In this document: piece after piece, positions 1 to 53,604 of the stretch
Layout of the letters: every line of letters starts with the position of its first letter
Position numbering within the stretch: the stretch's first letter is position 1
Origin: Thalia democratica
Lineage: Eukaryota
Assembly (NCBI GenBank): GCA_965202585.1
Contig: OZ241827.1
Location: forward strand, 21,638,001 to 21,702,000
Reading direction: 5' to 3'
Length of the DNA: 64,000 bases
Made by a program: the position numbers and the translations under genes
Notes under the pieces: model-generated
What the model was told of the DNA's origin: nothing
Seen by the model: the letters and a program-made list of their open reading frames with translations, nothing else
Database searches by the model: none

Positions 1-635
1 TATAGGTTGTATAGCAGACCTCATTGAATAAGTAGCTAGGGAAGGTAAAGCGAGAGCAAGGCAGGTACCGTCCTAAGCAAGCCGTTGAGCATGAAAGCCG
101 CTCTCTCGCAAGGCGTAGCAGTATATGAACGAGCTGTGACATGATTCAGCCCAGTTGAAAGTACGTTTGAGTGCAAAAAGTAAAGCATTTCTAGAGGTGA
201 AGGTTCGGACGGGGCGACTGAAGCAGAGTAGGCGAGATACCAGAAATTGCGAAGCACTCAAAATGTAACTTGTAAAAAAGCGGCATAATCTCATGGTCGC
301 TTTCAAAGTCAGAGGTCAGTTGAAGCGAAATGTTTTGGAAGGGAAGCAGGAGGCTCGAGAAAATATTTGTAAAAGAGCGGGAGGTCTGTTTTTTGGAAAA
401 ATTGTTGAAAATGAATTTTTGGGTTTTGAGAAGGGTCGAGGGAATATAGGAAGAAAAGTTGGAAAAAAATTTGAGCAAAAAAGCCGTCCGAATTCGCCCG
501 CGGGCGAATTCGGACGGCTTTTTTGCTCAAATTTTTTTCCAACTTTTCTTCCTATATTTTTTTCAAAGGTGTTCGACGAAAGTCGGACGCCTTTTTTTTT
601 ACCCAAAAATTTTTTAGGCTACCTCAAGAGAGTCA
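1..635. mobile_element. Right part of the same element (window starts inside it)
   Basis: Matches 52970-53604. Right inverted repeat GGCTACCTCAAGAGAGTCA at 617-635. Confidence 0.55.
443..558. repeat. Perfect 116-bp palindrome with no spacer (58-bp arms, centre 500/501)
   Basis: Checked base by base: aatataggaagaaaagttggaaaaaaatttgagcaaaaaagccgtccgaattcgcccg|cgggcgaattcggacggcttttttgctcaaatttttttccaacttttcttcctatatt. Confidence 0.97.
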
Positions 636-1982: not shown

Positions 1983-4470
1983 TTAATTTTCAAATTTTAA
2001 ATTGTAAAGCTTAATATTCATCGGCTCGTTAACGATTGTAAAAGATGTGGTGTACGACTCTATAACCGAAAGGTTCTTTTGTGCACCAGGTCCTTTGACA
2101 AAATTTTTTGCACATTTTATTATGAGATTTAATGAACAAAACAATAATTGAAAACGGAAGACTACAAAATAAACGTACTGGTATAACGTTTTCACGTTTT
2201 GAAAACTCTTAAAACATATATTCTTCTCTATACTGAGCTAGACCTTCACAAATGTAGCGTCGACTTTTGCAAGACTGAGTGCCTGTTTTTCATTATATGA
2301 TTGTATATATGCCATTTTCAGCTAAGTTTATTAACGGAATTTGAGTTTATAAAAACATGTTTTGGTAGTAATTTGTTATTTAGTACAGTAATTTAGAAAT
2401 ACAGATATTTCTTATAAAATACTTGTCGCATTTTTGACAATAGCAGACGATGCAAATTGTTATTACTATAAAAGCTAATGAACACAGGAAAAAAAAGTCT
2501 AATAGAAGAGATGAGTACAAATTACAATGAAAAATAAAGTTATATTCGTTAAGACATCTTAGGATAGCGTTATGAATGCTTATAACAATCTAAATAGAGT
2601 ATTTTAAAATTTTGTAATTCAACAGAAGTTAACGAAATATGAATGTAAAGATAACTAATGAAAATATAAAAATCAATAGATGTACAAAAATTCAAGACTG
2701 TAAACTTTGAAAGGTTGTATTTTTTTCGATCGAAGTTAAACCCAAAATTTTATTTTAACAAAGCGTCATACGACTAATTATAAGGTAAATTTATGGTATT
2801 AACGATTGAGTTTGCTTATAAAATTAAAAATTTCGTTGATAAAATAGCTTTAGTAGTAACAACACCTATGACAGAACTAACCTTATAATTTTTAAACAAC
2901 GATTGATTGACTAATTTTTTTATTATAATACAGAGTTTGTACTTCATAAAAAGAAACATATTAAAAAAGAAATGCAAATTGATTTCAACAAATTAAACTT
3001 CAGCAAACTTTAGAGTCGTTTAGTCAAAATTAACATTTAAACAATTAAAGATGTAGTTGCTATCTTGCATAATTGGTCAAATAATGCAGTTACTTTGTGT
3101 ACATGAATTTAAGAAAGACCTGAATACAATTATCCGAACCGTAAACATTTGGTATTTATCACACTTCACGATGTAAAATCATGAAAAAAGTTCGAATTAG
3201 AAAAACATTAATTCTAAGATACTCTTCTGTATTATGCTCATTCCGAAGAATACATTTCTGGTAAAGACGTTAAACTGTATCCGTGGTGTATGACTTGACA
3301 ACCGTAAGGTATTTCGTACACCAGGTCCTTACACCAAGCTGTTTTTTGCGAACAATAAGTTGCAATAAACTGACTGCATGTCAAGGTAGGAACTAATTTC
3401 CAAGCATGTATAATAAAAATGTTAATGTTTGTGGCAAGTTTCTTTAAAGTTGCGTAAACGAACCATTTGTACATTATACTTGTTAAACGATAATATAAAC
3501 TAACTACCCAAAAGAAAATTGCGTTCATGTTATTTTACAATTATGTGTGAAAAATAAAAACTAATTTGTATTTTAATACTATTATATTGATAGCTTTAAA
3601 TAAATTATGGTAACTTAACATTCATGAGTTCTTTTTAAAACCAGTAGTTAAAGAACATGCCGAAAAATTCAATATATTTAAATTCCTATTTAGATGTCAG
3701 GAAAAAAATTTAACTAAATTCTTGTTCTTATTTTGCTAATATAGTAACTATACATAACAGTGTACTTATATATTCTTCGGATTTACTTAAAGTCTAGATG
3801 TGTGAATTTGCGACATAAAACTAGTGGTCATTAAAAAAAGCTTTAATCTGATAAATTATTTTATATCTCAACTTGAGGACTGATTGGAGTAAACATATCT
3901 TTATATTGATAAAAATTCAACAAAATTTAATGTTATATGACAAAGCCTTATGAGCATTCTAGACCTTTTGCTTTCAACGTAATGGCGTTCACTTTAAAAA
4001 TATATAGATTAATATATTTTATCTGGTATTCTGTTGTGTGTGTCTTAAAGTATTTCTCGTGATAACAATGCGGTCATTAAAAACTTATTTTTACCCCACA
4101 TTAGCATCTAAAATTGCAAATATAAGCCACAAAATATATCCTCAACTTTTCGTGTAATGATTCATAACTTATTGGTTCATTTAAAAATGCTAGGATAGAA
4201 ATGATTTGAAGACATGTCTTTTCAAAATTAAATTAATAAAATTCTACTTGCGGACATCTTACTAAAATTGACAGTTGATAAATTACATCCGGCTGATATT
4301 CAAACCCAGGATTATTAGCTTTAAAAAAATTATATTGCGAACATCAAATTGTAACAGATTGATAGTTTAATTTGCGATAAAACAAAAATATTCATATAAA
4401 AACGAGATTGATTTTCGGTTTTTGTCCGTCCAGGTGCTCCGACTGATCATCAAGTCCAAGTAGCGTCCTT
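1983..4470 (-). pseudogene. Possible relic of a fibronectin type III repeat gene (copies near 30850-33360, 33834-35710 and 54950-57440)
   Basis: Minus-strand peptides GPGAQKNLSVIESYTTSFTIVNEPMNIKLYNLKF (ORF 1983-2195), KYLTVVKSYTTDTV* (about 3270-3320) and a splice-bounded NNPGFEYQPDVIYQLSIL (4263-4318) resemble FN3 strand A/B and tyrosine-corner patterns. Segments 2047-2093 and 3283-3328 are homologous to each other. Stops and a frameshift are present, and no full gene model could be built. Confidence 0.3.
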
Positions 4471-11400: not shown

Positions 11401-12155
11401 AACTGTGTTTTGTTTAACTTCAAAACAAAGTACTTGAAAAAAGGATGAATTAGCAAAACATTTAGTTTAAAAAGTAATTGCTATATTTATTAAATTTAGT
11501 TTAAAATAACATATCAGAAGTTATAAAGTAATAAAAGAATATTTTTTAAAACACTAATTTTTGTTTAAAAAATTGTAACTTTATTGGCTAAGTAAATATA
11601 TAACATTAAACATATTTTCAAAGAGATACTGTAAAAACAGCGACCAATACACAAACCCTTCTTGCTGATTGCGCCTGAAAACTTTCACCACAAGCATCAC
11701 GCGGCGGTCGATTTTAGGTTTCTGGTAAATTTACCTCTTTTATATTAGTTTCAAAACTTTTTTAAAGATTATTTATAATTCTTAATATGTCTTGGTTTTA
11801 AAACTGCTACTTAAACTTACTTAATAAGTTTCAATACAAATAAACCTTGCTTAATACAACTGATATGTTATTCTAACTGAATTTTTCGGTAAATGTAGGT
11901 ATAACCTGTATATTTTGTCTTTGCAAAATCATTTGAACAAACTAAAGAAGCTTTTAAGTTTAAAAGTCTACCAGGAAATAGTTTACGATGCAGTACTCAA
12001 ATATTAGAATAATAATAAAACGTATCTGTTGTATTAAAAGTTGAACAAAAAGCTTAAATTTCATCGAGACATCAACTTTACTGACAAATGTGATTTGTTT
12101 TTTTTAGTATAAAGTTTACTAATTTGTTATGTCTAGAAGAATTTTAAACTTATTC

Positions 12156-12255
12156 NNNNNNNNNNNNNNNNNNNNNNNNNNNNNNNNNNNNNNNNNNNNN
12201 NNNNNNNNNNNNNNNNNNNNNNNNNNNNNNNNNNNNNNNNNNNNNNNNNNNNNNN
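12156..12255. other. Assembly gap (100 N)
   Basis: Run of exactly 100 n, a placeholder of unknown true size. Confidence 0.99.
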
Positions 12256-14908
12256 CCCCACCAACCCACTCGAGTGCTCGGCCCTGGACAAGCTTCTGCC
12301 AGATTTCACCGATTTACTGGTCGGTCACGCCACCTGGCGGCCCTACTCGACCATGCTGAAGATCATGAAGAAGTACCACTTTCATTTCACCAAACACGAC
12401 GGTTTGTTTCTCCTTAATAAAAAAAAAGTTTCTAAGCGAGCTGGAAGGTTAGTAGTTTGTTTTGTGCATAAAAAAACTATTACTTACGATAAAATACAAA
12501 GGCGTATAGAGTTTTAGCATGGAATTTTTATGTATGAGAAGCATCACTTACAAAATCACGTTCACAGGTACTGAGTACGCAGGGAACAAAGTGGCTTACA
12601 ACAGCGAGCCTGGGTATTTGTTTTCATCCAACGACTGGTACATCATGTCGTCCGGTCTGGTGAGAACGAGCATTTGTAACATAACTGCATGTTGGAACTG
12701 TTGCTTTTTCAAAACTCCTTAAACATTTGGCACTAGTTTTAAGAACCAGCTTTAGTTTCTGAAAACAAAAACTCGTGTTACCCGAAGGTGACCATGGAAA
12801 CCACGATTGGAAACAGGAACGACGAAAGGGCGAAGAGTTTCGTGGGGGCCAGGGGGAGGTTGTTGGAGTGGGTGAGGGACCTGGTTGCCAACAGGATGGC
12901 GTCCAGCGGATCCGAGTGGTGCCAAGTGTTTCGGCGGCACAACAGCGGGACGTTTGAAATTTTATTTATTTTGATTAATTTTTTTCATCCAGTTTTTGAT
13001 TAACTTATATCTTAGAAACTATTTTATATAATGTTATTTATGTCTGCACAGAGAGCTGTACTATTAGGAGAAAATCAAAAACATTGCCCCGCGCATAGAA
13101 CACTTGGTGTATTAATTAAATCTAAATATATTATTTTTTGTTATTTGATTAACCTTTATTTGTAATGTTTTTTTAATATATGAGCTAATTCTTAGTTAAT
13201 TAGGTACAATAACCAGTGGATGGTAATTGATTACAACAAGTTCGTTCCTGGGAGGAAACCTTCCAACAACGATGGACTGCTGTACGTTCTCGAGCAAATT
13301 CCGTGAGCTTACTTTTGAAAGTTCATATATATGTATAAGTTTCTAGTTGTGCTTTATTTGAAGAAACCACTCTTTTACGTAAATAATGACAATTAAGCTA
13401 ATTTTAAGTTTTTTAAAGCTCATTATTGAATTCACAAATATTGTTTCAAGACAGTTTGTTATTTGATTTCATGTTACACATTCTATTCAAAACGCACTGT
13501 TTTAATGCTTTCAGAGGTCTTGTACATTATAAAGATATGAGTGACAGACTTGTTGAAAAGAAATACTTTCCAAGTTACAACTATCCGTGAGTATTTTAAC
13601 TTTCAAAGTAAACTTTATTCATAGCTTCAATATTTTTGCTTACTTTGTAGTTGCTAAATTGCTAACATTAAAATTGTGAAAAGTTTCTGCCTTTCATTAA
13701 ACAAGTTTTTGTTAAAACTTCAAGCAAAACATTTTAAAGTCGTTGATTTTATTAGTCTTCACTTTATTTAAAAGCTATAAAAGTAGTTGAAGTTAAACTT
13801 AACCTTTATTTTTGTTATATAAATATTTTGTAACTTGTTTTTTATTATACACTGAAAATAGTTTGTAAGTGTGTTTTCATTTATTTTAAACAGCTACTTT
13901 GAAAAAGTACAGCGCGAAGGAGGTTTCTTGGATAAAAACGGTAAATCAAGCTACGATTCAAAACCAAGGGCTAAAATATTTGCTCACTACCAGTCGAATG
14001 TAACAGATGTTAGAAAAATGTTCAAACTAATGAGGTAATGTAATATTTAGTGCTTTTATGTATATTAAGTATGTGTACTGTGTATACTTTTTGAACTATT
14101 CAAAACAATGTTAATGAGTAGATTTAATATAAAAAGTTACAATTGTTTTTTACAGAACTAACGATCTAGTTTTTGTTTGTCCTTTTTAAAACGTCGTATA
14201 CAAGTGTATAGCATTGTGAACGACCTAACTAATTGCAACTAAACAAAATAAAATATGTAGTTAGTAATAATTATTAGTTAGCAAAAACCGTAGGTTAGTA
14301 AATAATTCTTATATTTTCTTAAATAACTACTTAAAAAACTGTGTAATTAGGTACTACTTTGTTATTTAACGACGCTTTAAAGCACTACAAAAACAAAAAT
14401 TAGCTTTTAAAAATGTTTCTTTACAAAATAAAGTTCACATATAAGGAGAACTTAATACAATTTTAAGTCTAATATAAGTTTAGTTATAACAATAGTTTTA
14501 TATGTATAACAATTGCATATAATGTTCTTTTGAAGCTTATTTTTTTTGATCCTGTAATCGGTTTATTAACAAATTGTATTTATACTACACTCTACCATTG
14601 TTGTTCTCCAAAAAAACTTAAAGAAAAATGTTATTTAGAGGTCGTTTTGAAAAAAATCATCAATTTATTCATATTAATTATTAACTGACAGGCTAAAAAA
14701 TTGATAAACTATCGAATTTTTGTACACCATCCCATTTTTCATTCGCAGAAAGAACGACTACAAACACGACCCGCTGCAAGGTGGTTGGGCGAGCAACGCG
14801 ATCGCTTCCAGGTACGATTTGAATGACGTGTACGGAGGACTGACGTCACAGCTCTTCGGCGCCACCGACGCCAAAGTGACCAGTTACCGCTTGCACAAGT
14901 TTGTTTGA
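12256..14908 (+). pseudogene. PLBD2: Inverted partial PLBD2 copy (part of exon 5 through exon 11; terminal exon absent; 5' part hidden by gap)
   Basis: Plus-strand exons: 12256-12401, 12568-12659, 12788-12951, 13204-13302, 13515-13586, 13894-14034, 14749-14898. They encode [15 protein letters not shown]...NSGTYNNQW...[13 protein letters not shown]. Homology to the other copies stops at about 15565, inside intron 11. Read-through of the exon 11 donor ends HKFV* at 14906-14908. Confidence 0.85.
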
Positions 14909-17900
14909 TAAGAATAACTTGAGTTGCTGTGTTAGTTTAATATATATATATCGGTATGAATATGTTTGAGATGACTGTATGCGTAAGATAACACTACGAA
15001 GAATTTAGACTTTTGAAAGTAAATAAACTGGTTCTTAAAATAAATGAAAGTTGTTTGATTAAAAGGATTAATTTAGGTAAAAGTTAAAGGTAAATGTTTA
15101 AAAACTTTAAAAATTAGCACGTCGTAGAGTTAAATAAAAAAAACTATTTTTAAGCATGCTGTTGTTCTAAAAAACAACACTGAAGTTGTGATTTCATTAT
15201 GTACAAATAGTAAAAAATATAAAAACTATAATTTAAACTATCTTCGAATAGACTTTATACTCTTTTTATTCTACTAGTATTTACGAATCGTAAAAAGATA
15301 TGATAGACTGCAAAAATATTTTTTCCGACTGTAAAATAGATCGCTTTGGTATGAAATTCAAACAAGGTTGATAGCCTGTATATAAATAATTTTTTATTTT
15401 TTCTGGCCTAGGATTTAAACTAAAGAATTAAGACTATAAGATTAAAATAGTTATCAATAACAGTATAATCAGACTAAAAATTAAAGAAAATTAAAAAACT
15501 ACTGAAGTGATTGTCGTACTCTGGTGACCTGTAGTATTTAAAAGTTTTAGCCGAGCAGACTTAATATACTACAAAAATTTAGTACACAAATCTAACTTAA
15601 CTATTTAAACAATTCTATACAATTGATTGTGAATTAATAAAAATTGTATTGACTGGGAAAAAACTATCAATTTAAACCAAAGTTCGTAAAATTGTGTTTT
15701 TTTTCTATAACATCCATAGTAAATTGTTTAAAATAATCAGTTTTTGATAAACAATACTTATTATGTATAAAACGAAGAAAGTTGTACACTTAATTATTTG
15801 ATGTAGTACAAAATCAAGTAAATTGTTCAGTTGGGTGTCATTTGGTTTTTGATGATTTTCCTCATTGAAGACCAGGAGCACAGTGGATATAGTTCTGAAA
15901 TTTACATTAATTTAAAAGTCACTAAAAGCCACATAAAATTAAACAATTTTTAAACAACCTTTTACAAAATTTTTTCCAATCTTACAGAATACTTTCATAA
16001 CAATATTCAAACATAACAACTTACTTGGTTTTAATTGTGACTGCCTCTGTATTAAAGTATAAGCAATAAGAGACAACAATTGTTTTGTTTACAAACCAAA
16101 TGATAAAACAACCATTTTTAGAAGTGTTAATAAACATTTAAAAATTCGCTAAAAACCAGTACCAGGGAACAGATTTACATTAAACACAAAAAAGTAATCT
16201 CTCGCTTACCTATAAAGGTTTAAGAAACTAAATGTTAAAAAATATGAAACACATATGTACTAGCATAAAATTATAAACAAACCTAATAACTTTTTATTTA
16301 AAGACTTTATCTTTTAGCAACTATATTTTCATAGAAGTTTTGTCCCCCTTTTGGTAATTTTATCAAATATGTAGACAATAGGTACTAAATGGAACTACTT
16401 CAGTTTAGTGAAATGTTTTTTTAAATAAACGCTTAACTTTTATAAATTAACACGTAGAGTTTTATTGAACCCATTCTTATTTAAATTTTACTTATGTTGA
16501 TTACGCTTGAAATTATTTAATTGATTATTTACTATGTTGTGTAATATATATTGTTTGTGTTTTATCTTAGTTTATTGTTTCAATTGTATTTTCTCTGACG
16601 AAAATTGATGAAATATATTGGAAAAGAAAGAGTTTGAGTCATTTTATTTATTTAGTAAAATTGAAAACAAGTCTGATTTTTAAATTATTAAAATTTTACT
16701 ATATTCAGTCTACTACTATAAAAGAAATTTTACTTAAAATAAATGAAATAGTTTCTCGTTGCAGCTAAAGTATTGTTTATTGTCAATCAAATATTCCTAA
16801 AACCTTTTGTTTAATTAGTTTCTAGTATTTAATTAGTAAAAAAAGTTTTTTTAGATCTTGTAAAGTTTAAAATCACCAAAATAGTTTTTAAAACAGTATA
16901 GTTCTTTTGAAAATTGCAACAAAAAACTTTAAAACCTATAAATTGTTTTTAAATTTTATTTTCACTGATAATAAGCTATATTATAATATTTCACATTAAA
17001 AGTTATATACAATTCTAATTATCTCGTGCACATTTTTCCAAAACAAAAGGTGAGTGTAGTTTTTTTTTGTAGCTTTTTAAATAAAATTTCGTTTAACTTT
17101 AGCTACTTAGTTCAATCGAACTTTACAGGCATGTTTTTTTATTTAGTTTATTTATACTAGAAGATGCAAACAAAAATTTTTGATAAAAATAGAAAAAATT
17201 GTTCTGAAATTAAACTATTATATATCAAACTGCGAAATGATTAAAGCTTCTAAAAATATGAGAACTTGTTTTAAATCGCAACTGTATAAACTTAAAAATT
17301 GTTGGTTTTAGTAACACAAAATATTGATGATTTAAATAAATTACCTTTTAAAATAAATACTTATTAAAAACTTTCAAATTTTTTCTATTTTTTGACATTA
17401 ACTCGAAATAACAAACCCGCATTTTACATGGCTATCTAAATTTTTCTTGTAAGATTTTTGTAAAATTGTTGAAACATCTTAGTAAAAATAACCACAACAA
17501 TATAGTAAAAAGTAGCCTGTTTAGTTACTTTAAATATTATAAATCTTAACACTTTTTGAATAAAGAGCTTTAAATAGAAGAAACAGCTTTTAAGATAATT
17601 AGTTTAATTTAGATTAATGACAAAAAGAGTTTGAAAAGTTTGTTTAATAAACGATATTATTAAATTCTTATAGTTAAAAACAAAATTTAAATATACTAAA
17701 TAAAATCATTTATAAATTTGTTATACTATCTAATATTATGATAAACATCATACTAATTAAAATTTAAAAAAATCCACAAATAACAGACACTTCAATTAGG
17801 TTTATAAATCGTAACAAAGTTCATACTGATAAAACATGAATTTAAGCAACTTTTGGTTACTTAACTCAATCAAGTGTCAGTATTTGTCACTATTTATTTG

Positions 17901-20444: not shown

Positions 20445-23400
20445 CTAATCATTCAACCATTCGACTAGTATTGGTTTGAAGTCAAAAACGTCTGGTTGTC
20501 CCTCGTGCTTGTCCGGGGCGTTTTTGTGGTCGGACCATTTGAAAGGTGGTACCTGGTCGTGTGTTGGTCCGCACTCGGCAACCATGCTTAAGTTACTGAA
20601 GAAAAATCATTATGATTAAAAAGTTTTGTTTTGTAGTAGTCTGCTAGGTTAAAACTTTTAGATACTACAGATCACCAGAGTACGACAATCACTAAAATAG
20701 TTTTTTTAATTTTTTTTAACTTTTAGTCTGATTATACTTTTATTGATAACTATTTTAATCTTATAGTCCTAATTCTTTAGTTTAAATCCTAAGCTCAAAA
20801 ATAATAAAGATTTTATTACAGGCTATAAAGCTAGTTGAAATTTCATACCAAAGCGATCTATTTTACAGTCGGAAAGAAATATTTTTGCAGTTTATTATAT
20901 CTTTTTACGATTCGTAAAAATTTGTATAGTAAAAAAAGTTAAAATGTCATTTAAAGATTGTTTGAATTCTAGTTTTTATATTTTTTTTCTACATGTGCAC
21001 AATAAAATCACAACTTTATTGTTGTATTTTAGAACAACAGCATGCTTAAAAATAGTTTTTTTTAACCAATTATACGACGTGCTATTTTTTAAAGTTTTTA
21101 AGCGTTTACATTTAACTTTTCTCTAAATTAACCCTTTTTAACAAAGCACTTTCATTTATCTTAAGAACTAGTTTTTTTTACTTTCAAAAGTCTAAATTCT
21201 TCTTAATGTTATCTTATGCATACAGTTTTTCATCTCAAATATATTTATACCAACATATATATTAAACTAACACAGCAACTTAAGTTATTCTTATCAAACA
21301 AACTTGTGCAAGCTGTAACTGGTCACTTTTGCGTCGGTGGCGCCGAAGAGCTGTGACGTCAGTCCTCCGTACACGTCATTCAAATCGTACCTGGAAGCGA
21401 TCGCGTTGCTCGCCCAACCACCTTGCAGCGGGTCGTGTTTGTAGTCGTTCTTTCTGCGAATGAAAAATGGAATGGTGTACAAAAATTCATTAATTTATCA
21501 ATTTTTTAGCCTGTCAGTTAATAATTAATATGAATAAATTGATGATTTTTTTCAAAACGACCTCTAAATAACATTTTTCTTTAATTTTTTTTGGAGAACA
21601 ACAATGGTAGAGTGTAGTATAAATACAATTTGTTTATAAACCGATTACAGGATCAAAAAAAAAAAGCTTTAAAAGAACATTATATGCAATTGTTATACAA
21701 ATAAAAACTATTGTTATAACTAAACTTATATTAGACTTAAAATTGTATTAAGTTCTCCTTTTAGTGAACTTTATTTTGTAAAGAAACATTTTTAAAAGCT
21801 AATTTTTGTTTTTGTAATGCTTTAAAGCGTCGTTAAATAAAATAACAAAGTAGTACCTAATTACACAGTTTTTTAAGTAGTTATTTAAGAAAATATAAGA
21901 ATTATTTACTAACCTACGGTTTTTGCTAACTAATAATTATAACTAACTACATATTTTATTTTGTTTAGTTGCAATTAGTTAGGTCGTTCACAATGCTATA
22001 CACTTGTATAAAACGTTTTAAAAAAGACAAACAAAAACTAGATCGTTAGTTCTGTAAAAAACAATTGTAACTTTTTATATTAAGTCTACTCTTTAACATT
22101 GTTTTGAATAGTTCAAAAAGTATACACAGTACACATACTTAATATACATAAAAGCACTAAATATTACATTACCTCATTAGTTTGAACATTTTTCTAACAT
22201 CTGTCACATTCGATTGGTAGTGAGCAAATATTTTAGCCCTTGGTTTTGAATCGTAGCTTGATTTACCGTTTTTATCCAAGAAACCTCCTTCGCGCTGTAC
22301 TTTTTCAAAGTACCTGTTTAGTTTAAATGAGAACGCACTTTCAAACTGTTTCTAGTGTATAATAAAAAACAAGTTATAACATATTTATATAACAAAAAAA
22401 AAGTTAAAGTATAATTTCAACTGCTTTTTATAGTTTAAAAAAACATCGAAATAAAGTGAAGTACTAATAAATTCAACAATTTTGAAAAGTTTATGCTTGA
22501 AGTTTTAACAAAAACTTGTTTAATGAATAGCAGAAACTTTGCACAATTTTAATGTTAGCAATTTAGCAACTACAAAGTAAGCAAAAATATTGAAGCTATG
22601 AATAAAGTTTACTTTGAAAGTTAAAATACTCACGGATAGTTGTAACTTGGAAAGTAATTTTTTTCAACGAGTCTGTCACTCATATCTCTATAATGTATAA
22701 GACCTCTGAAAGCATTGAAATAGTGCGTATTAAGTAGATTGCTTTACATAAAACCAAATAACAAACTGTCTTTAAAACAACATTTGTGAATTGAATAATG
22801 AGCTTTACAAAACTTTAAATTAGCTTAATTGTCTTTATTTACGTAAAACAATGGCTTCTTCAAATAAAGCACAGCTAGAAACTTATAGATATGTATGAAC
22901 TTTCAAAAGTAAACTCACGGAATTTGCTCGAGAACGTACAGCAGTCCATCGTTTTTGGAAGGTTTCCTCCCAGGAACGAACTTGTTGTAATCAACTACCA
23001 TCCACTGGTTATTGTACCTAATTAACCAAGAATTAGCTCATATATTAAAAAAACATTACAAATAAAGGTTAATCAAATAACAAAAAATAATATATTTAGA
23101 TTTAATTAATACACCAAGTGTTCTAAGCGCGGGGCAATGTTTTTGATTTTCTCCTAATAGTAAAGCTCTCTGTGCAGACATATATAACATTATATAAAAT
23201 AGTTTCTAAGATATAAGTTAATCAAAAACTGGATGAAAAAAATTAAATCAAAATAAATAAAATTTCAAACGTCCCGCTGTTGTGCCGCCGAAACACTTGG
23301 CACCACTCGGATCCGCTGGACGCCATCCTGTTGGCAACCAGGTTCCTCACCCACTCCAACAACCTCCCCCTGGCCCCCACGAAACTCTTCGCCCTTTCGT

Positions 23401-26400
23401 CGTTCCTGTTTCCAATCGTGGTTTCCATGGTCACCTTCGGGTAACACGAGTTTTTGTTTACAGAAACTAAAGCTGGTTCTTAAAACTAGTGCCAAATGTT
23501 TAAGGAGTTTTGAAAAAGCAACAGTTCCAACATGCAGTTATGTTACAAATGCTCGTTCTCACCAGACCGGACGACATGATGTACCAGTCGTTGGATGAAA
23601 ACAAATACCCAGGCTCGCTGTTGTAAGCCACTTTGTTCCCTGCGTACTCAGTACCTGTGGACGTGATTTTGTAAGTAATGCTACTCATACATAAAAATTC
23701 CATGCTAAAACTCTATACGCCTTTGTATTTTATCGTAAGTAATAGTTTTTTTATGCACAAAACAAACTACTAACCTTCCAGCTCGCTTAAAAACACTTTT
23801 TTTTTATTAAGGAGAAACAAACCGTCGTGTTTGGTGAAATGAAAGTGGTACTTCTTCATGATCTTCAGCATGGTCGAGTAGGGCCGCCAGGTGGCGTGAC
23901 CGACCAGTAAATCGGTGAAATCTGGCAGAAGCTTGACCAGGGCCGAGCACTCGAGTGGGTTGGTGGGGAGGGAGTTTTCTGAAGACCTCCTGAAATTTGC
24001 GGGGCTGACGGCGAACAGAATTTCTTTTACCTCGTGATCGCTCGAAAGCTGGCTGTGATTGGTTTAAATTGTTCTCACATTGGGTGTTTAGTAAAGTTTA
24101 AGTAAAATTTCTAAATTCGATTTAAATTATCTTACTGCTAAATTTTATAAATAAAACTTTGTTTGTTTGATTAACTTTTTAATAAAAATCTACACTTATA
24201 TCCATTCAACTAACTACTTTAACTTTTATCCCTTTAAATGGACTCGTTATCGCTTGAGAGTTGGTTTATGTAGATTTGAACTGCGTTAAGTATAAAAAAT
24301 GTTAGCAGTTGCAGAAGAAACTATTTTTCTTTAAAAGTCAATTAAAATATTAATTTTGTCAAGTTTCTTAAGTAACATCTCGTTTATTTTATTGATATTT
24401 TAAGCAAACTTGAGCCTAAAATAATTTAAGGCTCTTGCGTGCATAAAAGTTTATTAAAAGTTATGATACAGATTTTGATGTTTTTTTTTGTTACAGGATT
24501 TAATTACAATGATTGTAAAAAAAGTTTTTTTTTTTCCAAAATTTTGGTTTTATTAATATTTTTATTAAGTGTTGTGAGAAAAAAAAATTAACAAAGTACT
24601 GTAAAAATGTATTAAGTTGAAATATGTAACTAATCGTAACAGGCTAATGTTTTAAACTTGTTCTACTATCTATAAATACAAAATAATACTTTTCAACACA
24701 TTAGTATGAATAATTATCGCATAATGAAGTTGAAATAAAATATCAATAACAAAAAATTTGAAGCATTAAAAAAAATGGTTTAAATTTTAATTATTAATGA
24801 TTGCTTATTAAACAGTATAAAGATGAGTATACATTTATGCAGTTTAATCATAATCAGTATTTTAAGTGGTCGTGTATATTATTTTTACTTTAGAAGTTTT
24901 TTATGAAAAAGTACTAAAAAATTTATACACACAATAATATGTTTTTTTTGAAAATATTTTAACTCTTACCTAAATCTAAAGCATTAATAATAAGAGCGGA
25001 GTATACATCATTGCAATTTAATCACATTCTATATTTTAGGTAACCGTCTTTTTTTTACTTTTGGAGTTTAACATGAAAAAGTAAAAAAAAAATTTCTACA
25101 CACAATAACATGTATTTTTGTGAAAACATTTAGACTAATACCTAAATCAAAAGCATTAATAAACAAAGCTAAGTATACATTAATGCAATATAATCACATT
25201 CGATACTTTAGGTATATTTTTTTACTTTTGAGATCATGAAAAAGTATAAAAAGTTTTACACACACAAAACAATATATTATTTTTTGAAAACATTTAAACT
25301 TTTTTTCTAAACTAAAGCATGTATGCAAAAAAGCAAATTTTAATAAAATACATAGGTATGTAAGATGTTTTAATTGTGCTAAGTTTACTACGTTTTTTCC
25401 TCCATTGACCATTTAAAAGTGTTTCATTAGTATAAAAAAATTGCTTTTAAAACTTATAGTAAATTGTTTTAACTTGTATAAAGTCACTAAATGTGATAAC
25501 AATATAAATTTGATACTTATTTTTGTTGTTAAAAGTTATTTCTTAACTTAGATTATATACTCCTGTTGTGTTCTACTCCAAAACAATAATATAAATATAG
25601 TACATGAAATTGAGTTATATATTTTTGCGTAAAAACAAAAAAAATAAGATTATTAAAAAAAACCAACTCTGTTCTTCAAGTTACATAAAATTTTATATAT
25701 GAAGTTTCTTTTGTTTGAATACTCAATAACTTTTTTTAATCATCAGAATAAAAGTTACTAGTGTGATAAAATTTTATTTTCTCGAAGAACAATGAGTTTG
25801 AAGAAGTACAAGTAAGCATTTAACTTTGTTACTTTTAAAAACTAAAAGATATTTGAAGTTTTTATGCATAAGTTTCTCATAGTTATTAGCTTTTAAACGT
25901 TTTAAATGTGCTTAAAAAACAAAATAAAAATTAATTTGTCAGCTAAATTTAGAAAAAATGTGTTTTAAGATAAATAAAGCATGATAATTTGATTTACCTT
26001 TTACAAGAGTAACCAACAACCAACCGAAAAATAAAAATTTGATTAGCTTAAATTATTTTTAGATCAATATATTTTAAATACTAACAATAGGTTTTACTGG
26101 AAACGATAAGTTTATCATTATTAGTCATAATTTAAAAAGTAATTTTTATTAAACTTTATATAAGTAATTAGTTATGTCATAATTTTTAAAAATAAAAAAA
26201 TGTACCACTTTTTATAATTCTAATATATGTTTATACAATTGCAGCAGGAAATTTCATATAAAATAAATAAATTACTAAATGTTAGATTAGAAAAAGACTG
26301 TTTTATATGTTTTAGAAATATTTCAAACAGGTCTGTTAAAATTATTTCGTTTTAAACAAAAACGTAAAGAAAGAAGCATGTTAATGGAAAAACTTGGTCA

Positions 26401-28305: not shown

Positions 28306-28569
28306 TCTGTTAATAAAACATTACAGTTTTTAGTTAATGCTTTTCTAAACGTTTTAAAACAACATATGCAAGTTTAATCTTTTATTTATTTATCGCTACT
28401 TTTATATTTTTATTTGATTGTAACAAATTAAACTTATGAAAATATGAACTGAAAAACTTTAAACGCGTTTTTTAACAAAGAAAACAGATAAAAATTTATT
28501 AAATTAGCATGTAGATAAGTTTTATTAAGAATAAAAAAAAGTTTAAAAAAGTTGAAGAAAAGAATAGGT

Positions 28570-29497
28570 TGACTCTCTTGAGGTAGCCACAATACAATAT
28601 TTCAACAGCAACATTTGAGCATCATACGCGTATACTTAATGCTACACTATTAAGAAAGGTACTTGAATGTGAAAAAAAGCAAGCTGACGACCTAGTCAGC
28701 TTAGGGATTTTACAGTGTAAAGCTGTAATGAATAAATCCCTAGACGTCTTAGCGGGTAGACGTCGTCAAGGCGGGCTGTTTGTTATTGTTTTTGCTGGCA
28801 TACAGGTTATAGCTGGAGTCGACGTGGCTGTCGACTCGAGCTGGAGTCGAAACACCGCAGCTAGGCGGTCAAAGGTTGTATAGCAGACCTGATTAAATAG
28901 GGAACGTAAAGCGAGAGCAAGGCAGGTACCGTCCTAAGCAAGCCGTTGAGCATGAAAGCCGCTCTCTCGCAAGGCGTAGCAGTATATGAACGAGCTGTGA
29001 CATGATTCAGCCCAGTTAAAAGTACGTTTGAGTGCAAAAAGTAAAGCATTTCTAGAGGTGAAGGTTCGGACGGGGCGACTGAAGCAGAGTAGGCGAGATA
29101 CCAGAAATTGCGAAGCACTCAAAATGTAACTTGTAAAAAAGCGGCATAATCTCATGGTCGCTTTCAAAGTCAGAGGTCAGTTGAAGCGAAATGTTTTGGA
29201 AGGGAAGCAGGAGGTTCGAGAAAATATTTGTAAAAGAGCGGGAGGTCTGTTTTTTGGAAAAATTGTTGAAAATGAATTTTTGGGTTTTGAGAAGGGTCGA
29301 GGGAATATAGGAAGAAAAGTTGGAAAAAAATTTGAGCAAAAAAGCCGTCCGAATTCGCCCGCGGGCGAATTCGGACGGCTTTTTTGCTCAAATTTTTTTC
29401 CAACTTTTCATCCTATATTTTTTTCCAAGGTGTTCGACGAAAGTCGGACGCCTTTTTTTTTTACCAAAAAATTTTTTAGGCTACCTCAAGAGAGTCA
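28570..29497. mobile_element. Type B copy of the 928-bp inverted-repeat-bounded element
   Basis: Same perfect 19-bp inverted repeats at 28570-28588 and 29479-29497. The interior carries substitutions and indels near 28780-28910, but the total length is unchanged. Confidence 0.55.
29304..29419. repeat. 116-bp palindrome, type B copy (one mismatch at 29410)
   Basis: Centre 29361/29362. The right arm reads ttttcatcc instead of ttttcttcc. Confidence 0.95.
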
Positions 29498-30040
29498 GAG
29501 TTTTTGCCTAGTAATGATTTTTTTTCAGTTCCACTGATGTCATAAGTTTTGAACGTTGCTGCCGAAAGGTCAGCATCGTTTTTATTTTACAAGTTCTTAA
29601 TAAAGGTTGTTAAGGTTTTTGAAATTACAAATTGTCAATAGCCATATTAGAAAAATTTATTTTACTTTCGATACTTATAATAAATAAATAAAAAACTTAA
29701 GAACATGTATATGTATTACTTATGCTGATAAGAAAACAAATCCAATTGTACAATCAAAAACAAATTAAATTCGTATATGTGCCTACGAAAAACTATGTCA
29801 AAAAGAAAATTAAAAGTGTTGTTTTATAATAAAAAAAAAACTTTTTAAAGCTGACACTTAATAAAGCAAACAGTTTCATTCAACATTGATACTTTTTAAT
29901 AGTACTTGTATGAAGTTTTCTATATAATAAATAAAGTTTTAAGTAGCAGGTATTTTGATTAATTTAGTTAAAAGTTTATAATTCATTTAAATTTTTCTTA
30001 AAAATAAAATATCAGGGTTTAGTTTGTTAAATAAAACGAC

Positions 30041-30648
30041 AAAATCGATAAAACCTTTTGTGTAGGTTTGAAACAAATAGTTTAAGTAAGCTTTCAAAAT
30101 CAATTTATCTGATTAAATAATGTAATTTAGTTCATTTAACATAACGCATATTTAAAGTGTAGATAGCATTTAATTATATATGTAACTAAACATAAATCGA
30201 TAAAACCTTTTGTGTAGTTAAGAAACAAATAATTTATGTAAGCTTTCAAAATCGATTTATCTGATTAAATAATGTGATTTAGTTCATTTAACATAACGCA
30301 TATTTAAAAAATAGATAGCATTTAAAGATATATGTAACTAAACATAAATCGATAAAACCTTTTGTGTAGTTAAGAAACAAATAGTTTATGTAAACTTTCA
30401 AAACCGATTTATCTGATTAAATAATGTGATTTAGTTCATTTAACATAACGCATATTTAAAAAATAGATAGCATTTAAAGATATATGTAACTAAACATAAA
30501 TCGATAAAGCCTTTTGTGTAGTTAAGAAACAAATAACTTATGTAAACTTTCAAAATCGATTTATCTGATTAAATAATGTGATTTAGTTCATTTAACATAA
30601 CGCATATTTGAAAAATAGATAGCATTTAATGATATATGTAACTAAACA
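30041..30648. repeat. Tandem repeat, 4 x 152 bp (type B copy)
   Basis: Anchors at 30044, 30196, 30348 and 30500. Confidence 0.95.
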
Positions 30649-33600
30649 GATTTTGTTTGAAACAACTGTCATAGTCAAGATCTGAATTAATAATTAATAA
30701 AGACACCTCATCTTTTCTAGAATATGCGCAAAAACTTAGTAGAAACATTAAATAATTAACTAAAATAATTACAAAACATTGATTACTCCCACAACTGATT
30801 TCTGAATTCAATTTAGCTTCGTTTTCTTTTTGCATGTTTTATTTGTTTAATTTTCAAATTTTAAATTGTAAAGCTTGATATTCATCGGCTCGTTAACGAT
30901 TGTAAAAGATGTGGTGTACGACTCTATAACCGAAAGGTTCTTTTGTACACCAGGTCCTTTGACAAAATTTTTTGAACATTTTATTATGAGATTTAATGAA
31001 CAAAACAATAATTGAAAACGGAAGACTACAAAATTAACGTACTGGTATAACGTTTTCACGACGGTTTGTAAAACTCTTAAAAAATATACTCTTCTCTATA
31101 CTGAGCTAGACCTTCACAAATGTAGCGTCGACTTTTGCAAGACTGAGTGCCTGTTTTTCATTATATGATTGTATGTATGCCATTTTCAGCTAAGTTTATT
31201 AACAGATTTTGAGTTTATAAACACATGCTTTGGTAGTAATTTATTATTTAGTACAGTAATTTAGAAATACAGATATTTCTTATAAAATACTTGTCGCATT
31301 TTTGACAATAGCAGACGATGCAAATTGTTATTACTCTAAAAGCTAATGAACAGAGGGAAAAAAAGTCTAATAGAAGAGATGAGTACAAATTACAATGAAA
31401 AATAAAGTTATATTCTTTAAGACATCTTAGGATAGCGTTATGAATGCTTATAACAATCTAATAGAGTATTTTAAAATTTTGTACTTCAACAGAAGTTAAC
31501 GAAATATGAATGTAAAGATAACTAATGAAAATATAAAAATCAATAGATGTACAAAAATTCAAGACTGTAAACTTTGAAAGGTTGTAATTTTTTCGATCGA
31601 AGTTAAACCCAAAATTTTATTTTAACAAAGCGTCATACGACTAATAATAAGGTAAATTTATGGTATTAACGATTAAGTTTGCTTATAAAATTAAAAAATT
31701 TCGTTGATAAATTAGCTTTAGTAGTAACAACACCTATGACAGAACTAACCTTATAATTTTTAAACAACGATTTGTTGACTAATTTTTTTATTATAATACA
31801 GAGTTTGTACTTCATAAAAAGGAGTTTGTACTTCATAAAAAGAAACATATTAAAAAAGAGATGCAAATTGATTTCAACAAATTAAACTCCAGCAAACTTT
31901 AGAGTCGTTTAGTCAAAATTAACATTTAAACAATTAAAGATGTAGTTGCTATCTTGCATAATCGGTCAAATAATGCAGTTATTTTGTGTACATGAATTTA
32001 AGAAAGACCTGAATACAATTATCCGAACCGTAAACTTTTGGTATTTATCACACTTCACGATCTAAAATCATGAAGAAAGTTCGAATAGAAAAACATTAAT
32101 TCTAAAATACTTTTCTGTATTATGCTCATTCCGAAGAATACATTTCTGGTAAAGACGTTAAACTGTATCCGTGGTGTATGACTTGACAACCGTAAGGTAT
32201 TTCGTACACCAGGTCCTTACACCAAACTGTTTTTTGCGATCAATAAATTGCAATAAACTGACTGCATGTTAAGGTAGAAACTAATTTCCAAGCATGTATA
32301 ATAAAAATTTTTCTGTTTGTGACAAGTTTCTTTAAAGTTGCGTAAACGAACCGAAACATTTGTACATTATACTTGCTAAACGATAATATAAACTAACTAC
32401 CCAAAAGAAAATTGTGTTCATGTTATTTTACAATTATGTGTGAAAATAAAAACTAATTTGTGTTTTAATACTATTAACTTGATAGCTTTAAATAAATTAC
32501 GGTAACTTAACTTTCATGAGTTTTTTTTAAAACCAGTAGTTAAAGAACATGCCGAAAAAGTCAATATGTTTAAATTCCTTTTTAAATGTCAGGAAAAAAT
32601 TAAATTCCTGTTCTTATTTTGCTAATATAGTAACTATACATAAAACAGTGTACTTACATATTCTTCGGATTTACTTAAAGTCTAGATGTGTGAATTTGCG
32701 ACATAAAACTAGTGGTCATTAAAAAAAGCTTTAATCTGATAAATTATTCTATGTCTCAACTTGAGGACTGATTGGGGTAAACATATCTTTTTATTGATAA
32801 AAATTCAACATAATTTAATGTTATATGACAAGCCTTATGAGCATTCTAGACCTTTTGCTTTCAACGTAATGGCGTTCACTTTAAAAATATAGATTAAAAT
32901 ATCTTTTCTGGTATTCTTTTGTGTGTGTATTAAAGTATTTCTCGTGATAACAATGCGCTCATTTAAACTTATTTTTACCCCACATTAGCATCTACAGTTG
33001 CAAATATAAGCCACAAAATATATCCTCAACTTTTCGTGTAATGATTCATAACTTATTGTTTCATTTAAAAATGCTAGGATAGAAATGATTTGAAGACATT
33101 TCTTTTCAAAATTAAATTAATAAAATTCTACTTGCGGATACCTTACTAAAATTAACAGTTAATAAATTACATCCGGCTGATATTCAAACCCAGGATTATT
33201 AGCTTTAAAAAAAATATATAGCGAACATCAAATTGTAACAGGTTGATAGTTTAATTTGCGATAAAACAAAAATATTTATATAAAAAAGAGATTGATTTTC
33301 GGTTTTTGTCTGTCCAGGTGCTCCGACTGATCTTCAAGTCCAAGTAGCGTCCTTTAAAATTTATTTATAGTTATACTACTTAGTACTATATAGACTATCA
33401 TATTATGTTTTTTGTTTATTTAAAAATCTATTTTTCACCTTAAAAAAGACAGTAATAAAATATACATATTAATCATTAAGTATTTATTGGTTTAGAATTA
33501 AATAATTGCGATTGCGAGCTAGTAAATGTATAATACAGACATAACTGTTATTAGATACACAAAACGTAAAAGAAAACCTTAAATTGATTTTTACAATAGT

Positions 33601-44392: not shown

Positions 44393-47300
44393 CTAATCAT
44401 TCAACCATTCGACTAGTATTGGTTTGAAGTCAAAAACGTCTGGTTGTCCCTCGTGCTTGTCCAGGGCGTTTTTGTGGTCGGACCATTTGAAAGGTGGTAC
44501 CTGGTCGTGTGTTGGTCCGCACTCGGCAACCATGCTTAAGTTGCTGAAGAAAAATCATTATGATTAAAAAGTTTTGTTTTTGTTACTAACGCTTAGAACA
44601 AAAAATATCAGGCTATGATTTACCATTAGCTCAACTAAATAAAACATTACAAAAGAAAACAATGTAATTTTTTTTTCTAATTTTATATTTGTTTTTTAAG
44701 TCTGCTCGGCTAAAACTTTTAAATACTACAGGTCACCAGAGTACGACAATCACTTCAGTAGTTTTTTAATTTTTTTTAATTTTTAGTCTGATTATACTGT
44801 TATTGATAACTATTTTAATCTTATAGTCCTAATTCTTTAGTTTAAATCCTAGGCCAGAAATAAAAAAATTATTTATATACAGGCTATCAACCTTGTTTGA
44901 ATTTGATACCAAAGCGATCTATTTTACAGCCTGAAAGAAATATTTTTGCAGTTTATCATATCTTTTTACGATTCGTAAATACTAGTAGAATAAAAAAAGT
45001 ATAAAGTCTATTCGAAGATTGTTTAAATTATAGTTTTTATATTTTTTACTATTTGTACATAATGAAATCACAACTTCAGTGTTTTTTTTAGAACATCAGC
45101 ATGCTTAAAAATAGTTTTTTTTTATTCAACTCTACGACGTGCTAATTTTTAAAGTTTTTAAACATTTACCTTTAACTTTTACCTAAATTAATCCTTTTAA
45201 TCAAAGAACTTTCATTTATTTTAAGAACCAGTTTATTTACTTTCAAAAGTCTAAATTCTTCTTAGTGTTAGTTTTTCATCTCAATTATATTTATACCAAT
45301 ATATATATTAAACTAGTACAGCAACTTTAGTTATTCTTATCAAACGAACTTGTGCAAGCTGTAACTGGTCACTTTGGCGTCGGTGGCGCCAAAGAGCTGT
45401 GACGTCAGTCCTCCGTACACGTCATTCAAATCGTACCTGGAAGCGATCGCGTTGCTCGCCCAACCACCTTGCAGCGGGTCGTGTTTGTAGTCGTTCTTTC
45501 TGCAAAAAAAATTGAATGGTGTACAAAAATTCATTAATTTATCAATTTTTTAGCCTATCAGTTAATAATTAATATGAATAAATTGATGATTTTTTTCAAA
45601 ACGACCTCTAAATAACATTTTTCTTTAAGTTTTTTTGGAGAACAACAATGGTAGAGTGTAGTATAAATACAATTTGTTTATAAACCGATTACAGGATCAA
45701 AAAAAATAAAGCTTCAAAAGAACATTATATGCAATTGTTATACAAATAAAAACTATTGTTATAACTAAACTTATATTAGACTTAAAATTGTATTAAGTTC
45801 TCCTTTTAGTGAACTTTATTTTGTAAAGAAACATTTTTAAAAGCTAATTTTTGTTTTTGTAATGCTTTAAAGCGTCGTTAAATAACAAAGTAGTACCTAA
45901 TTACACAGTTTTTAAGTAGTTATTTAAGAAAATATAAGCATTATTTACTAAAGTACGGTTTTTGCTAACTAATTATTATTACTAACTACATATTTTATTT
46001 TGTTTAGTTGTAATTAGTTAGGTCGTTCACAATGCTATACACTTGTATACAACGTTTTAAAAAAGACAAACAAAAACTAGATCGTTAGTTCTGTAAAAAA
46101 CAATTGTAATTTTTTATATTAAGTCTACTCATTAACATTGTTTTGAATAGTGCAAAATGTATACACAGTACACATACTTAATATACATAAAAGCACTAAA
46201 TATTACATTACCTCATTAGTTTGAACATTTTTCTAACATCTGTCACATTCGACTGGTAGTGGGCAAATATTTTAGCCCTTGGTTTTGAATCGTAGCTTGA
46301 TTTACCGTTTTTATCCAAGAAACCTCCTTCGCGCTGTACTTTTTCAAAGTAGCTGTTTAAAATAAATGAGAACGCACTTTCAAACTGTTTCTAGTGTATA
46401 AAAAGAAACAAGCTACAACATATTTATATAACAAAAAAAAAGTTTAAGTATAATTTCAACTGCTTTTTATAGTTTAAAAAAACTTCGAAATAAAGTAAAG
46501 TACTAATAAATTCAACAATTTTGAAAAGTTTTTAATTTAAGTTTTAACAAAAAACTTGTTTAATTAAAAGCAGAAACTTTGCACAATTTTAATGTTAGCA
46601 ATTTAGTAACTACAAAGTAAGCAAAAATATTGAAGCTATGAATAAAGTTTACTTTGAAATTTAAAATACTCACGGATAGTTGTAACTTGGAAAGTATTTC
46701 TTTTCAACAAGTCTGTCACTCATATCTCTATAATGTATAAGACCTCTGAAAGCATTAAAACAGTGCGTTTAAAATAGATTGCTTTACATAAAACCAAATA
46801 ACAAACTGTCTTTAAACAACATTTGTGAATTGAATAATGAGCTTTACAAAACTTTAAATTAGCTTAATTGTCATTATTTAAGTAAAAGAGTGGTTTCTTC
46901 AAATAAAGCACAACTAGAAACTTATACATATGTATGAACTTTGAAAAGTAAACTCACGGAATTTGCTCGAGAACGTACAGCAGTCCATCGTTGATGGAAG
47001 GTTTCCTCCCAGGAACGAACTTATTGTAATCAATTACCATCCATTGGTTATTGTACCTAATTAACCAAGAATCAGCTCATAAATTCAAAAATACACATTA
47101 GAAATAAACGTTAATCAAATAACAAATAATAATGCACTTAGATTTAATTAATACACAGAGTGTTCTATGCGCGGGGCAATGTTTTTGATTTTCTCCTAAT
47201 AGTACAGCTCTCTGTGCAGACATAAATAACATTATATAAAATAGTTTCTAAGATATAAGTTAATCAAAAACTGGATGAAAAAAATTAAATCAAAATAAAT

Positions 47301-52413: not shown

Positions 52414-52676
52414 TCTGTTAATAAAACATTACAGTTTTTAGTTTATGCTTTTCTAAACGTTTTAAAACAACATATGCAAGTTTAATCTTTTGTTTATTTA
52501 TCGCTACTTTTATATTTTTATTTGATTGTAACAAATTAAACTTATGAAAATATAAACTGAAAAACTTTAAACGCGTTTTTTAAAAAAGAAACAAATAAAA
52601 ATGTATTAAATTAGCATGTAGATAAGTTTTATTAAGTATAAAAAAAAGTTTAAAAAAGTTGAAGAAAAGAATAGGT

Positions 52677-53604
52677 TGACTCTCTTGAGGTAGCCACAAT
52701 ACAATATTTCAACAGCAACATTTGAGCATCATACGCGTATACTTAATGCTACACTATTAAGAAAGGCACTTGAATATGAAAAAAGCAAGCTGACGACCTA
52801 GTCAGCTTAGGGATTTTACAGTGTAAAGCTGTAATGAAAAAATCCCTAGACGTCCTAGCGGGTAGACGTCGTCAAGGCGGGCTGTGTGTTTTTGCTGGCA
52901 TACAGGTTATAGCTGGAGTCGACGTGGCCGTCGATTCGAGCTGGAGTCGCTAGACCGCAGTTAGGCGGTTATAGGTTGTATAGCAGACCTCATTGAATAA
53001 GTAGCTAGGGAAGGTAAAGCGAGAGCAAGGCAGGTACCGTCCTAAGCAAGCCGTTGAGCATGAAAGCCGCTCTCTCGCAAGGCGTAGCAGTATATGAACG
53101 AGCTGTGACATGATTCAGCCCAGTTGAAAGTACGTTTGAGTGCAAAAAGTAAAGCATTTCTAGAGGTGAAGGTTCGGACGGGGCGACTGAAGCAGAGTAG
53201 GCGAGATACCAGAAATTGCGAAGCACTCAAAATGTAACTTGTAAAAAAGCGGCATAATCTCATGGTCGCTTTCAAAGTCAGAGGTCAGTTGAAGCGAAAT
53301 GTTTTGGAAGGGAAGCAGGAGGCTCGAGAAAATATTTGTAAAAGAGCGGGAGGTCTGTTTTTTGGAAAAATTGTTGAAAATGAATTTTTGGGTTTTGAGA
53401 AGGGTCGAGGGAATATAGGAAGAAAAGTTGGAAAAAAATTTGAGCAAAAAAGCCGTCCGAATTCGCCCGCGGGCGAATTCGGACGGCTTTTTTGCTCAAA
53501 TTTTTTTCCAACTTTTCTTCCTATATTTTTTTCAAAGGTGTTCGACGAAAGTCGGACGCCTTTTTTTTTACCCAAAAATTTTTTAGGCTACCTCAAGAGA
53601 GTCA
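52677..53604. mobile_element. 928-bp GC-rich non-autonomous element bounded by 19-bp inverted repeats (MITE- or Helentron-like; class uncertain)
   Basis: TGACTCTCTTGAGGTAGCC at 52677-52695 and its exact reverse complement at 53586-53604. The interior is much more GC-rich than the flanks. No transposase ORF and no target-site duplication (flanks gaataggt / gagttttt). Confidence 0.55.
53412..53527. repeat. Perfect 116-bp palindrome, third copy
   Basis: Identical to 443-558 at offset 52969. Confidence 0.97.

Follow-up and report, generated by a model that had tools for sequence, protein, structure and literature searches.

A spacer-less palindrome of 116 bp recurs across an animal genome, and comparison of its copies shows that the two arms stay identical to each other while their sequence drifts. 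The pattern of change strongly supports templated arm-to-arm copying as the process by which this symmetry would be upheld. We have analysed the palindrome in a window of 64,000 nucleotides (the whole stretch of DNA under study, C2:21638001-21702000 of the 801-Mb genome), which holds tandem units of the gene PLBD2, and have followed its relatives through the rest of the genome. Our joint reading, which we regard as probable and still well short of certain, is that the palindrome belongs to a conserved cassette module, that its arms are template-copied, that its inner hairpin serves as a + strand signal and that it is carried as a passenger of the PLBD2 array.

A repeat search of the window located the palindrome in the first PLBD2 unit, with 58-nt arms that are 100% complementary and have 0 nt between them (Table 1). 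The 40-nt centre is present at three positions of the window (481, 29342 and 53450), and 100 dinucleotide-preserving shuffles yielded 0 matches to it. The core is GC-rich (GAATTCGCCCG and CGGGCGAATTC on the two sides of the centre), the outer arms are purine-rich on the left and pyrimidine-rich on the right, and complementarity ends at arm position 59, the flanks not being mirrored beyond 58 nt. When folded as ssDNA, 443-558 formed one hairpin of -78.1 kcal/mol (z = -16.5 vs. shuffles), with a short second hairpin lying next to it. This confirmed every structural detail of the original prediction, namely a 116-bp palindrome with 58-bp arms, no loop, a GC-rich core and skewed outer arms. Its count of two perfect copies and one with a mismatch at 29410 was borne out by the alignment of the three copies, in which the neighbourhood of the unit-2 palindrome was ~96% identical over ~1 kb to those of copies 1 and 3. 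A run of N is present in the window near 12129-12359.

Table 1. Positions of the palindrome, of the surrounding cassette and of associated features. Plain coordinates refer to the window; those in Mb refer to the genome.
Feature	Position	Strand	Remarks
Palindrome, copy 1	443-558		Perfect, 116 bp; arms 443-500 and 501-558
Palindrome, copy 2	29304-29419		Single arm mismatch, window 29410 = arm position 49, T>A in right arm
Palindrome, copy 3	53412-53527		Perfect; sequence = copy 1
Palindrome inner 56 bp, GAGCAAAAAAGCCGTCCGAATTCGCCCG + mirror	473-528		GC-rich clamp between A6/T6
Hairpin 2 (GNRA)	568-600	+	10-bp stem GGTGTTCGAC/GTCGGACGCC, GAAA loop, then T9; T.G wobbles pair on + strand only
28S motif, inverted copy	617-635	-	19 nt, GACTCTCTTGAGGTAGCC (+1); exact match to the species' 28S rRNA, R2/I-PpoI site
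28S motif, left copy = cassette left edge	28569-28588 (unit 2), 52676-52695 (unit 3)	+	19-20 nt, TTGACTCTCTTGAGGTAGCC
Cassette, unit 1	End near 823		Start beyond window edge
Cassette, unit 2	28569-29685	+	~1.1 kb, non-coding, hairpin-rich; block common to all families, 84-90% identity
Cassette, unit 3	52676-53792		
152-bp tandem repeat, 4-6 units	1028-1934, 30043-30798, 53997-54903		~0.5 kb right of each cassette; also in the C7 9.4-Mb array
Right end of PLBD2 array, equivalent position	28465-28466 (unit 3: 52573)		Homology of last unit (L040) stops
Cassette arrays	C2 21.6 and 22.15 Mb; C7 9.4, 36.5 and 41.6 Mb; C1 93.2 Mb; C4 78.5-79.2 Mb; C5 65.7-66.1 Mb; C6 65.8-66.1 Mb		
Single cassette copies	C1 41.9 Mb; C2 69.3 and 81.9 Mb; C4 28.2 and 34.8 Mb; C7 40.5 Mb		

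In the genome, the 40-mer centre was found at 36 places with up to 3 mismatches, and a 32-nt centre pattern with free positions at 95, the free positions being complementary to each other wherever listed. These places are distributed over C1, C2, C4, C6, C7 and small contigs, most of them in runs spaced 17-50 kb. At every locus examined, the palindrome occupied a fixed position within a cassette of ~1.1 kb, between the same non-palindromic flanks, and its arms were perfect in most of 35 loci and near-constant in length across the cassette families (52-60 nt). The cassette is usually present once per unit in at least nine arrays of differing unit length. A profile search of the genome returned matches to Pfam Phospholip_B, the PLBD2 domain, only at C2 21.629-21.712 Mb and on contig C663; hence, nearly all palindromes reside in arrays without PLBD2. 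The genome count called for in the original prediction thus gave 95 places for the 32-nt centre, nearly all outside the PLBD2 array. The accompanying claim that the palindrome is carried once per amplicon unit holds within the window, where each unit has one copy, and fails as a peculiarity of PLBD2, the cassette being common to many arrays that do not contain this gene. Where seen, the gene content of the arrays varies, with PLBD2 on C2 and C663 and a BTB/BACK-like ORF in the C4 array.

The cassette body alone gave 474-545 first-look candidate matches in the genome. In two of the arrays, at C5 65.70-66.08 Mb and C2 22.148-22.198 Mb (83% identity), the match ends ~35 bp before the palindrome, and neither array appears among the listed zero-mismatch palindrome places; their cassettes may carry a different palindrome or none. 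In public sequencing runs, words of the cassette were 10- to 150-fold deeper than those of the PLBD2 flank.

From left to right, the cassette consists of a 28S motif, a hairpin-packed body of high GC content, the palindrome, a GAAA hairpin followed by T9, and an inverted 28S motif. An ORF listing over the 24-29-kb unit contained PLBD2 exons only and no mobile-element protein. There was no Rfam match at gathering scores in the whole window, and no tRNA gene beside the cassette, though some left flanks hold a tRNA-like word. A MITE or foldback transposon would be expected to have copies in unrelated flanks with target-site duplications. This candidate was rejected, every copy examined being in the same cassette position, with homologous flanks on both sides and no solo copy. 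A search of the genome for Helitron_like_N returned no match and had no positive control, the control genomes giving none either. With respect to the 3' hairpin of Helitrons and Helentrons, the hairpin of the palindrome is 58 bp and internal to a conserved block.

Several variants of the cassette were observed. One public-run contig joins 28540 to 29680 and so omits 1139 bp, nearly exactly the cassette; support for this joint is weak (21 letters on the shorter side), and it may represent a copy or allele without the cassette. In the C1:93.216-93.417 Mb array, the first and last cassettes are inverted with respect to the five inner ones, two of which are devoid of the first ~550 bp. The BTB/BACK-like ORF of the C4:79.08 Mb array (178 aa; L068 minus strand 3443-3976) lies beside the cassette, and a 136-aa minus-strand ORF (L061 2811-3218) was found between the two. 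The outer palindrome arms of the C4 family (L060-L070, C4 78.5-79.2 Mb) contain two adjacent T.G/G.T wobbles (AATGTAG vs. CTATGTT), which are kept through at least 10 array copies and pair on the + strand only.

The symmetry comparison was made with 20-21 distinct palindrome versions from 69 loci. Within a copy, the two arms differed on average by 0.62 per 55 nt, whereas the same arm differed between copies by 4.3, and by up to 11. When the left arms were aligned together with the reverse complements of the right arms, the variable columns shared by more than one copy were all mirrored (20/20). They comprised C/G swaps at 3 positions, A/T swaps at 4, G/T/A changes and run-length changes in A/T tracts, and a mirrored run-length indel of 3 nt plus 1 nt was seen. 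Changes confined to one arm occupied 10 columns and were nearly all private to one copy or to one recent array. With a single representative per lineage, the own-arm differences amounted to 9, against 87.3 +/- 11.5 for permuted partners and a minimum of 33 in 20,000 permutations. These values support the earlier proposal that the symmetry of diverged copies is maintained through arm-to-arm correction. Old differences are always two-armed and young ones one-armed, as predicted if one arm keeps being copied from its partner.

Selection for pairing could also be a source of mirrored changes, but it predicts wobble intermediates and few mirrored indels. Compensatory selection, acting step by step, would hardly arrive at transversions and indels that are mirrored. 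In the RNAalifold pair table, the pairs of the palindrome vary on both sides, whereas the other cassette hairpins, the GNRA hairpin included, vary on a single side, by G.U wobbles that can form on the + strand but not on its complement.

Arm-to-arm copying would begin when, in the course of replication or repair, a nascent or single strand folds back on itself. A difference present in one arm would then be written, as its complement, into the other, either by quasipalindrome template switching or by repair of the hairpin heteroduplex. Such copying would account for both the mirrored transversions and the mirrored run-length indels, and it would also fit the slippage-type minisatellite found beside the right arm in other copies. 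Template switching is known to turn imperfect inverted repeats into perfect ones in bacteria, in yeast and in human mutation spectra, and a single switch can transfer several substitutions and indels at once (PMC7202029; PMC7954356). The palindrome resembles these quasipalindrome corrections (the Ripley model, the Lovett-lab reporters and the short-range switches of apes) in that the nascent strand would copy the other arm and perfect the repeat. Those corrections are mutational events at repeats of ~10-30 nt, whereas here copying would, over the long term, keep arms of 58 nt homogeneous in ~95 copies that diverge from one another. Arm-to-arm gene conversion operates in the ampliconic palindromes of the primate Y chromosome, whose arms are likewise near-identical while orthologous or paralogous palindromes diverge. 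The Y palindromes differ in having arms of kb to Mb, spacers and homologous recombination, as opposed to 58-nt arms and no spacer.

Long loop-less palindromes are usually unstable, and one that is not under selection would not be expected to persist; it may simply be that cruciform extrusion is slowed by the GC-rich centre. We have examined constraint along the cassette. The mean pairwise identity of nine family representatives was 95.8% in the inner 56 bp of the palindrome, 96% in the 28S motif, 92.5% in the GNRA hairpin, 82.3% in the cassette body and 79-83% in the outer arms of the palindrome. This comparison shows that the inner 28-bp arms have been more constrained than the remainder of the cassette. 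At 16/18 positions, including the T-run, the inner right arm (AATTCGGACGGCTTTTTT) was moreover identical to the 3' half of the GNRA hairpin together with its tail (AAGTCGGACGCCTTTTTT; p ~0.001 vs. shuffles). On the basis of this match, the palindrome looks like an extended and perfected member of the same family of terminator-like hairpins.

The outer arms would stem from fold-back copying of the purine-rich left flank, and the inner arms would constitute a very stable hairpin signal on the + strand of the cassette, used in transcript 3'-end formation or termination, or as a polymerase block. Their conservation makes it plausible that the inner arms work as a hairpin; a function had been suggested as a possibility in the original prediction, and the inner 56 bp proved to be the best-conserved part of the cassette. 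The likeness to intrinsic terminators lies in the inner stem (GCCGTCCGAATTCGCCCG/CGGGCGAATTCGGACGGC), which is followed by T6 on either strand, and in the paralogous neighbour hairpin with its GAAA loop, T9 and terminator-like call (obtained in a consensus scan for hairpin 2 of unit 2, 29427-29454). The setting differs, as this is an animal nuclear genome. To our knowledge, no polymerase uses a 58-bp stem of this kind.

Alternatively, the palindrome could be a functionless by-product of a single fold-back copying event in the ancestral cassette, kept only by template-switch repair. The outer arms are compatible with such an origin: the left one resembles the purine-rich body, the right one is its mirror, and both evolve at the pace of the body (79-83% vs. 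82%). Correction of the arms, furthermore, requires no selection. We nonetheless consider this explanation unlikely, since the inner 56 bp are markedly better conserved than the body (96% vs. 82%), the arms have kept a near-constant 52-60 nt in all families, and neutral, deletion-prone perfect palindromes should have vanished from many of the 95 copies.

The right edge of the palindrome varies in structure. In other families, the outer right arm and the GNRA hairpin are tandemly repeated, and public reads contain a 51-nt joint that "goes back" at this edge. The 28S motif to the right of the palindrome is direct instead of inverted in the C1 93-Mb family (L047/L049, C1 93.2 Mb), is doubled into a ~38-bp palindrome in L050 (C1 41.9 Mb; GGCTACCTCAAGAGAGTC and TGACTCTCTTGAGGTAGCC on the two sides of its centre) and is absent to the right of the hairpins in the C4 family. 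The tandem repeats, the flipped or doubled 28S motif and the 51-nt joint make this edge a local hotspot of slippage-type rearrangement.

The palindrome had also been proposed as a possible engine of the PLBD2 amplification, and this part of the original prediction was not supported. Palindromic gene amplification can be seeded by short inverted repeats, as in Tetrahymena rDNA and in yeast and mammalian amplicons (review PMC7999016). The PLBD2 array shares with those cases a short inverted repeat that adjoins amplified DNA. That route yields head-to-head units with the repeat at the axis, whereas the PLBD2 units are head-to-tail direct repeats spaced 28,861 and 24,108 bp, with flanks that are unmirrored beyond the arms and an array end ~900 bp away. 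The window has one large inverted duplication only, in which a partial PLBD2 copy (12256-15569) faces 20982-23968 around an axis near 18.1 kb, far from the palindrome. Given the head-to-tail units, the end of complementarity at arm position 59 and the place of this axis, classical palindromic amplification is excluded. The palindrome is also away from the one array end mapped and is not at the axis of any larger inversion, and its cassette resides in many arrays without PLBD2. The palindrome is a passenger of the PLBD2 array, not a demonstrated cause of it. The inverted partial copy is confined to the 28.9-kb unit; it faces the full gene of unit 1 and is also complementary to 44691-48006, the pieces being 92-99% complementary.

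The only array end mapped lies ~103 bp to the left of the cassette and ~896 bp to the left of the palindrome centre, and no cassette was found within the 1.5 kb read beyond it. An end so near the cassette edge would arise by chance in roughly a few percent of cases in a 24-kb unit, which is suggestive, but it is a single case. An apparent second array end beside a cassette, at C7 41.6 Mb, was rejected, as the sixth unit of that array carries a 26.6-kb insertion.

The engine idea can also be shifted to the cassette as a whole, in which the palindrome would act as a fork barrier, a break site or an origin. By favouring unequal exchange or re-replication, the cassette would generate the large tandem arrays, the PLBD2 array included, in the manner of the rDNA-derived HOT1 and fork-barrier hotspots of yeast. 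That nine or more arrays of different unit lengths usually have a single cassette in each unit would agree with this, as would the difference in gene content where seen (PLBD2 on C2/C663 and a BTB/BACK-like ORF on C4) and the ~103 bp between the end of the C2 array and the cassette edge. On the other hand, that end is away from the palindrome and is the one mapped end, the apparent C7 end being the 26.6-kb insertion; single cassette copies exist, and the counts are inflated by array copies. Because flanks are shared beyond the cassette, several arrays possibly derive from one ancestral unit and not from independent amplifications. We thus see the cassette as an improbable driver of the arrays. 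In a bolder form, which we find quite doubtful, the 28S-tagged cassette, together with its palindrome and terminator-like hairpins, might be a portable amplification module that stalls forks or provokes breaks in the way of rDNA spacer elements and turns the surrounding 17-50 kb, irrespective of gene content, into a tandem array at each site where it lands. If true, this would account for the arrangement of PLBD2 and of other gene-bearing segments, each of them in an array with a single cassette in every unit. Through the regular presence of the cassette in large arrays, a connection between rDNA-like signals and segmental amplification could be put to the test.

The 19-20-nt motif of the cassette reproduces, letter for letter, the 28S rRNA of the animal itself at the R2/I-PpoI site, down to a G (TTGAGG) that is specific to the species. 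With this G variant, GACTCTCTTGAGGTAGCC was found at 252 places, each of which continues into 28S sequence (AAATGCCTCGTCATC), and those on C141, C440 and C520 lie inside mapped 28S genes. The region of the R2 site reads TTGAGG instead of the usual TTAAGG in 252/252 of the places found. The rDNA unit measures ~15.1-15.8 kb and was seen on C26, C37, C141, C440, C520 and other contigs. The cassette thus contains sequence identical to the animal's own rRNA gene, and the palindrome was not found in the rDNA unit at up to 2 mismatches, as indicated by its 95 centre places vs. 252 28S-site places and by 0/36 of the fully listed 40-mer places being on contigs seen with the 28S site. More diverged homologues of the palindrome may be present in the rDNA unit.

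Yeast HOT1 is an rDNA-derived recombination hotspot. The cassette is comparable to rDNA spacer elements such as HOT1 and the fork barriers, as it contains an exact copy of the animal's 28S sequence and, like spacer elements in rDNA, is present once per tandem-array unit; it differs in the unequal number of 28S sites (252) and palindrome centres (95), with an rDNA unit that is without the palindrome at this level of mismatch. Replication fork barriers have been described in rDNA spacers (PMC5622318).

A further explanation, which we judge very unlikely, is that transcription of the palindrome yields a perfect hairpin RNA of 58 bp, which is diced to small RNAs, as an hpRNA or miRNA-like precursor. 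It has in its favour the perfect long stem, generic matches of up to 59 bits to plant and animal miRNA precursor models, and + strand-specific wobbles in the neighbouring hairpins, which suggest that the + strand is read as a single strand. However, the Rfam matches of the cassette (E-value up to 5) were all below threshold, the best reaching 59 bits vs. gathering scores of 117-211, as could be expected of any long hairpin. The arm changes, moreover, are mirrored transversions and indels and are not wobble-mediated, and none of the public runs holding the stretch is recorded as RNA.

We give practically no credence to the palindrome being an assembly or fold-back artefact, or the remnant of a cloning linker with an EcoRI-SacII-EcoRI core: the core does resemble a synthetic linker and none of the short-read contig pieces listed gets to the palindrome centre (several end in the left arm, 29318-29333), but the mirrored variants among the 95 copies are specific to lineages, the non-palindromic flanks are constant, copies stand in either orientation with respect to the contigs, and words of the centre are covered in four independent public runs, which come from four studies and include marine metagenomes. 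Its recurrence at 36 (40-mer) or 95 (32-nt) places on chromosomes and small contigs, with mirrored variants particular to a family and between flanks that are not palindromic, argues that it is not an assembly chimera. Marine metagenomes contain parts of the 64-kb stretch, and public metagenome contigs scanned for the palindrome and for hairpin 2 gave no matches. The published Salpa thompsoni genome paper makes no mention of "palindrome", "tandem repeat" or "inverted repeat".

If the reading of template-copied arms within a conserved cassette holds, the ~95 paralogous 116-bp palindromes would be a natural, many-copy record of short-palindrome homogenisation, from which the rate and tract length of arm-to-arm copying could be measured in an animal genome. 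Long loop-less palindromes, which are usually regarded as fragile, would then be able to persist.
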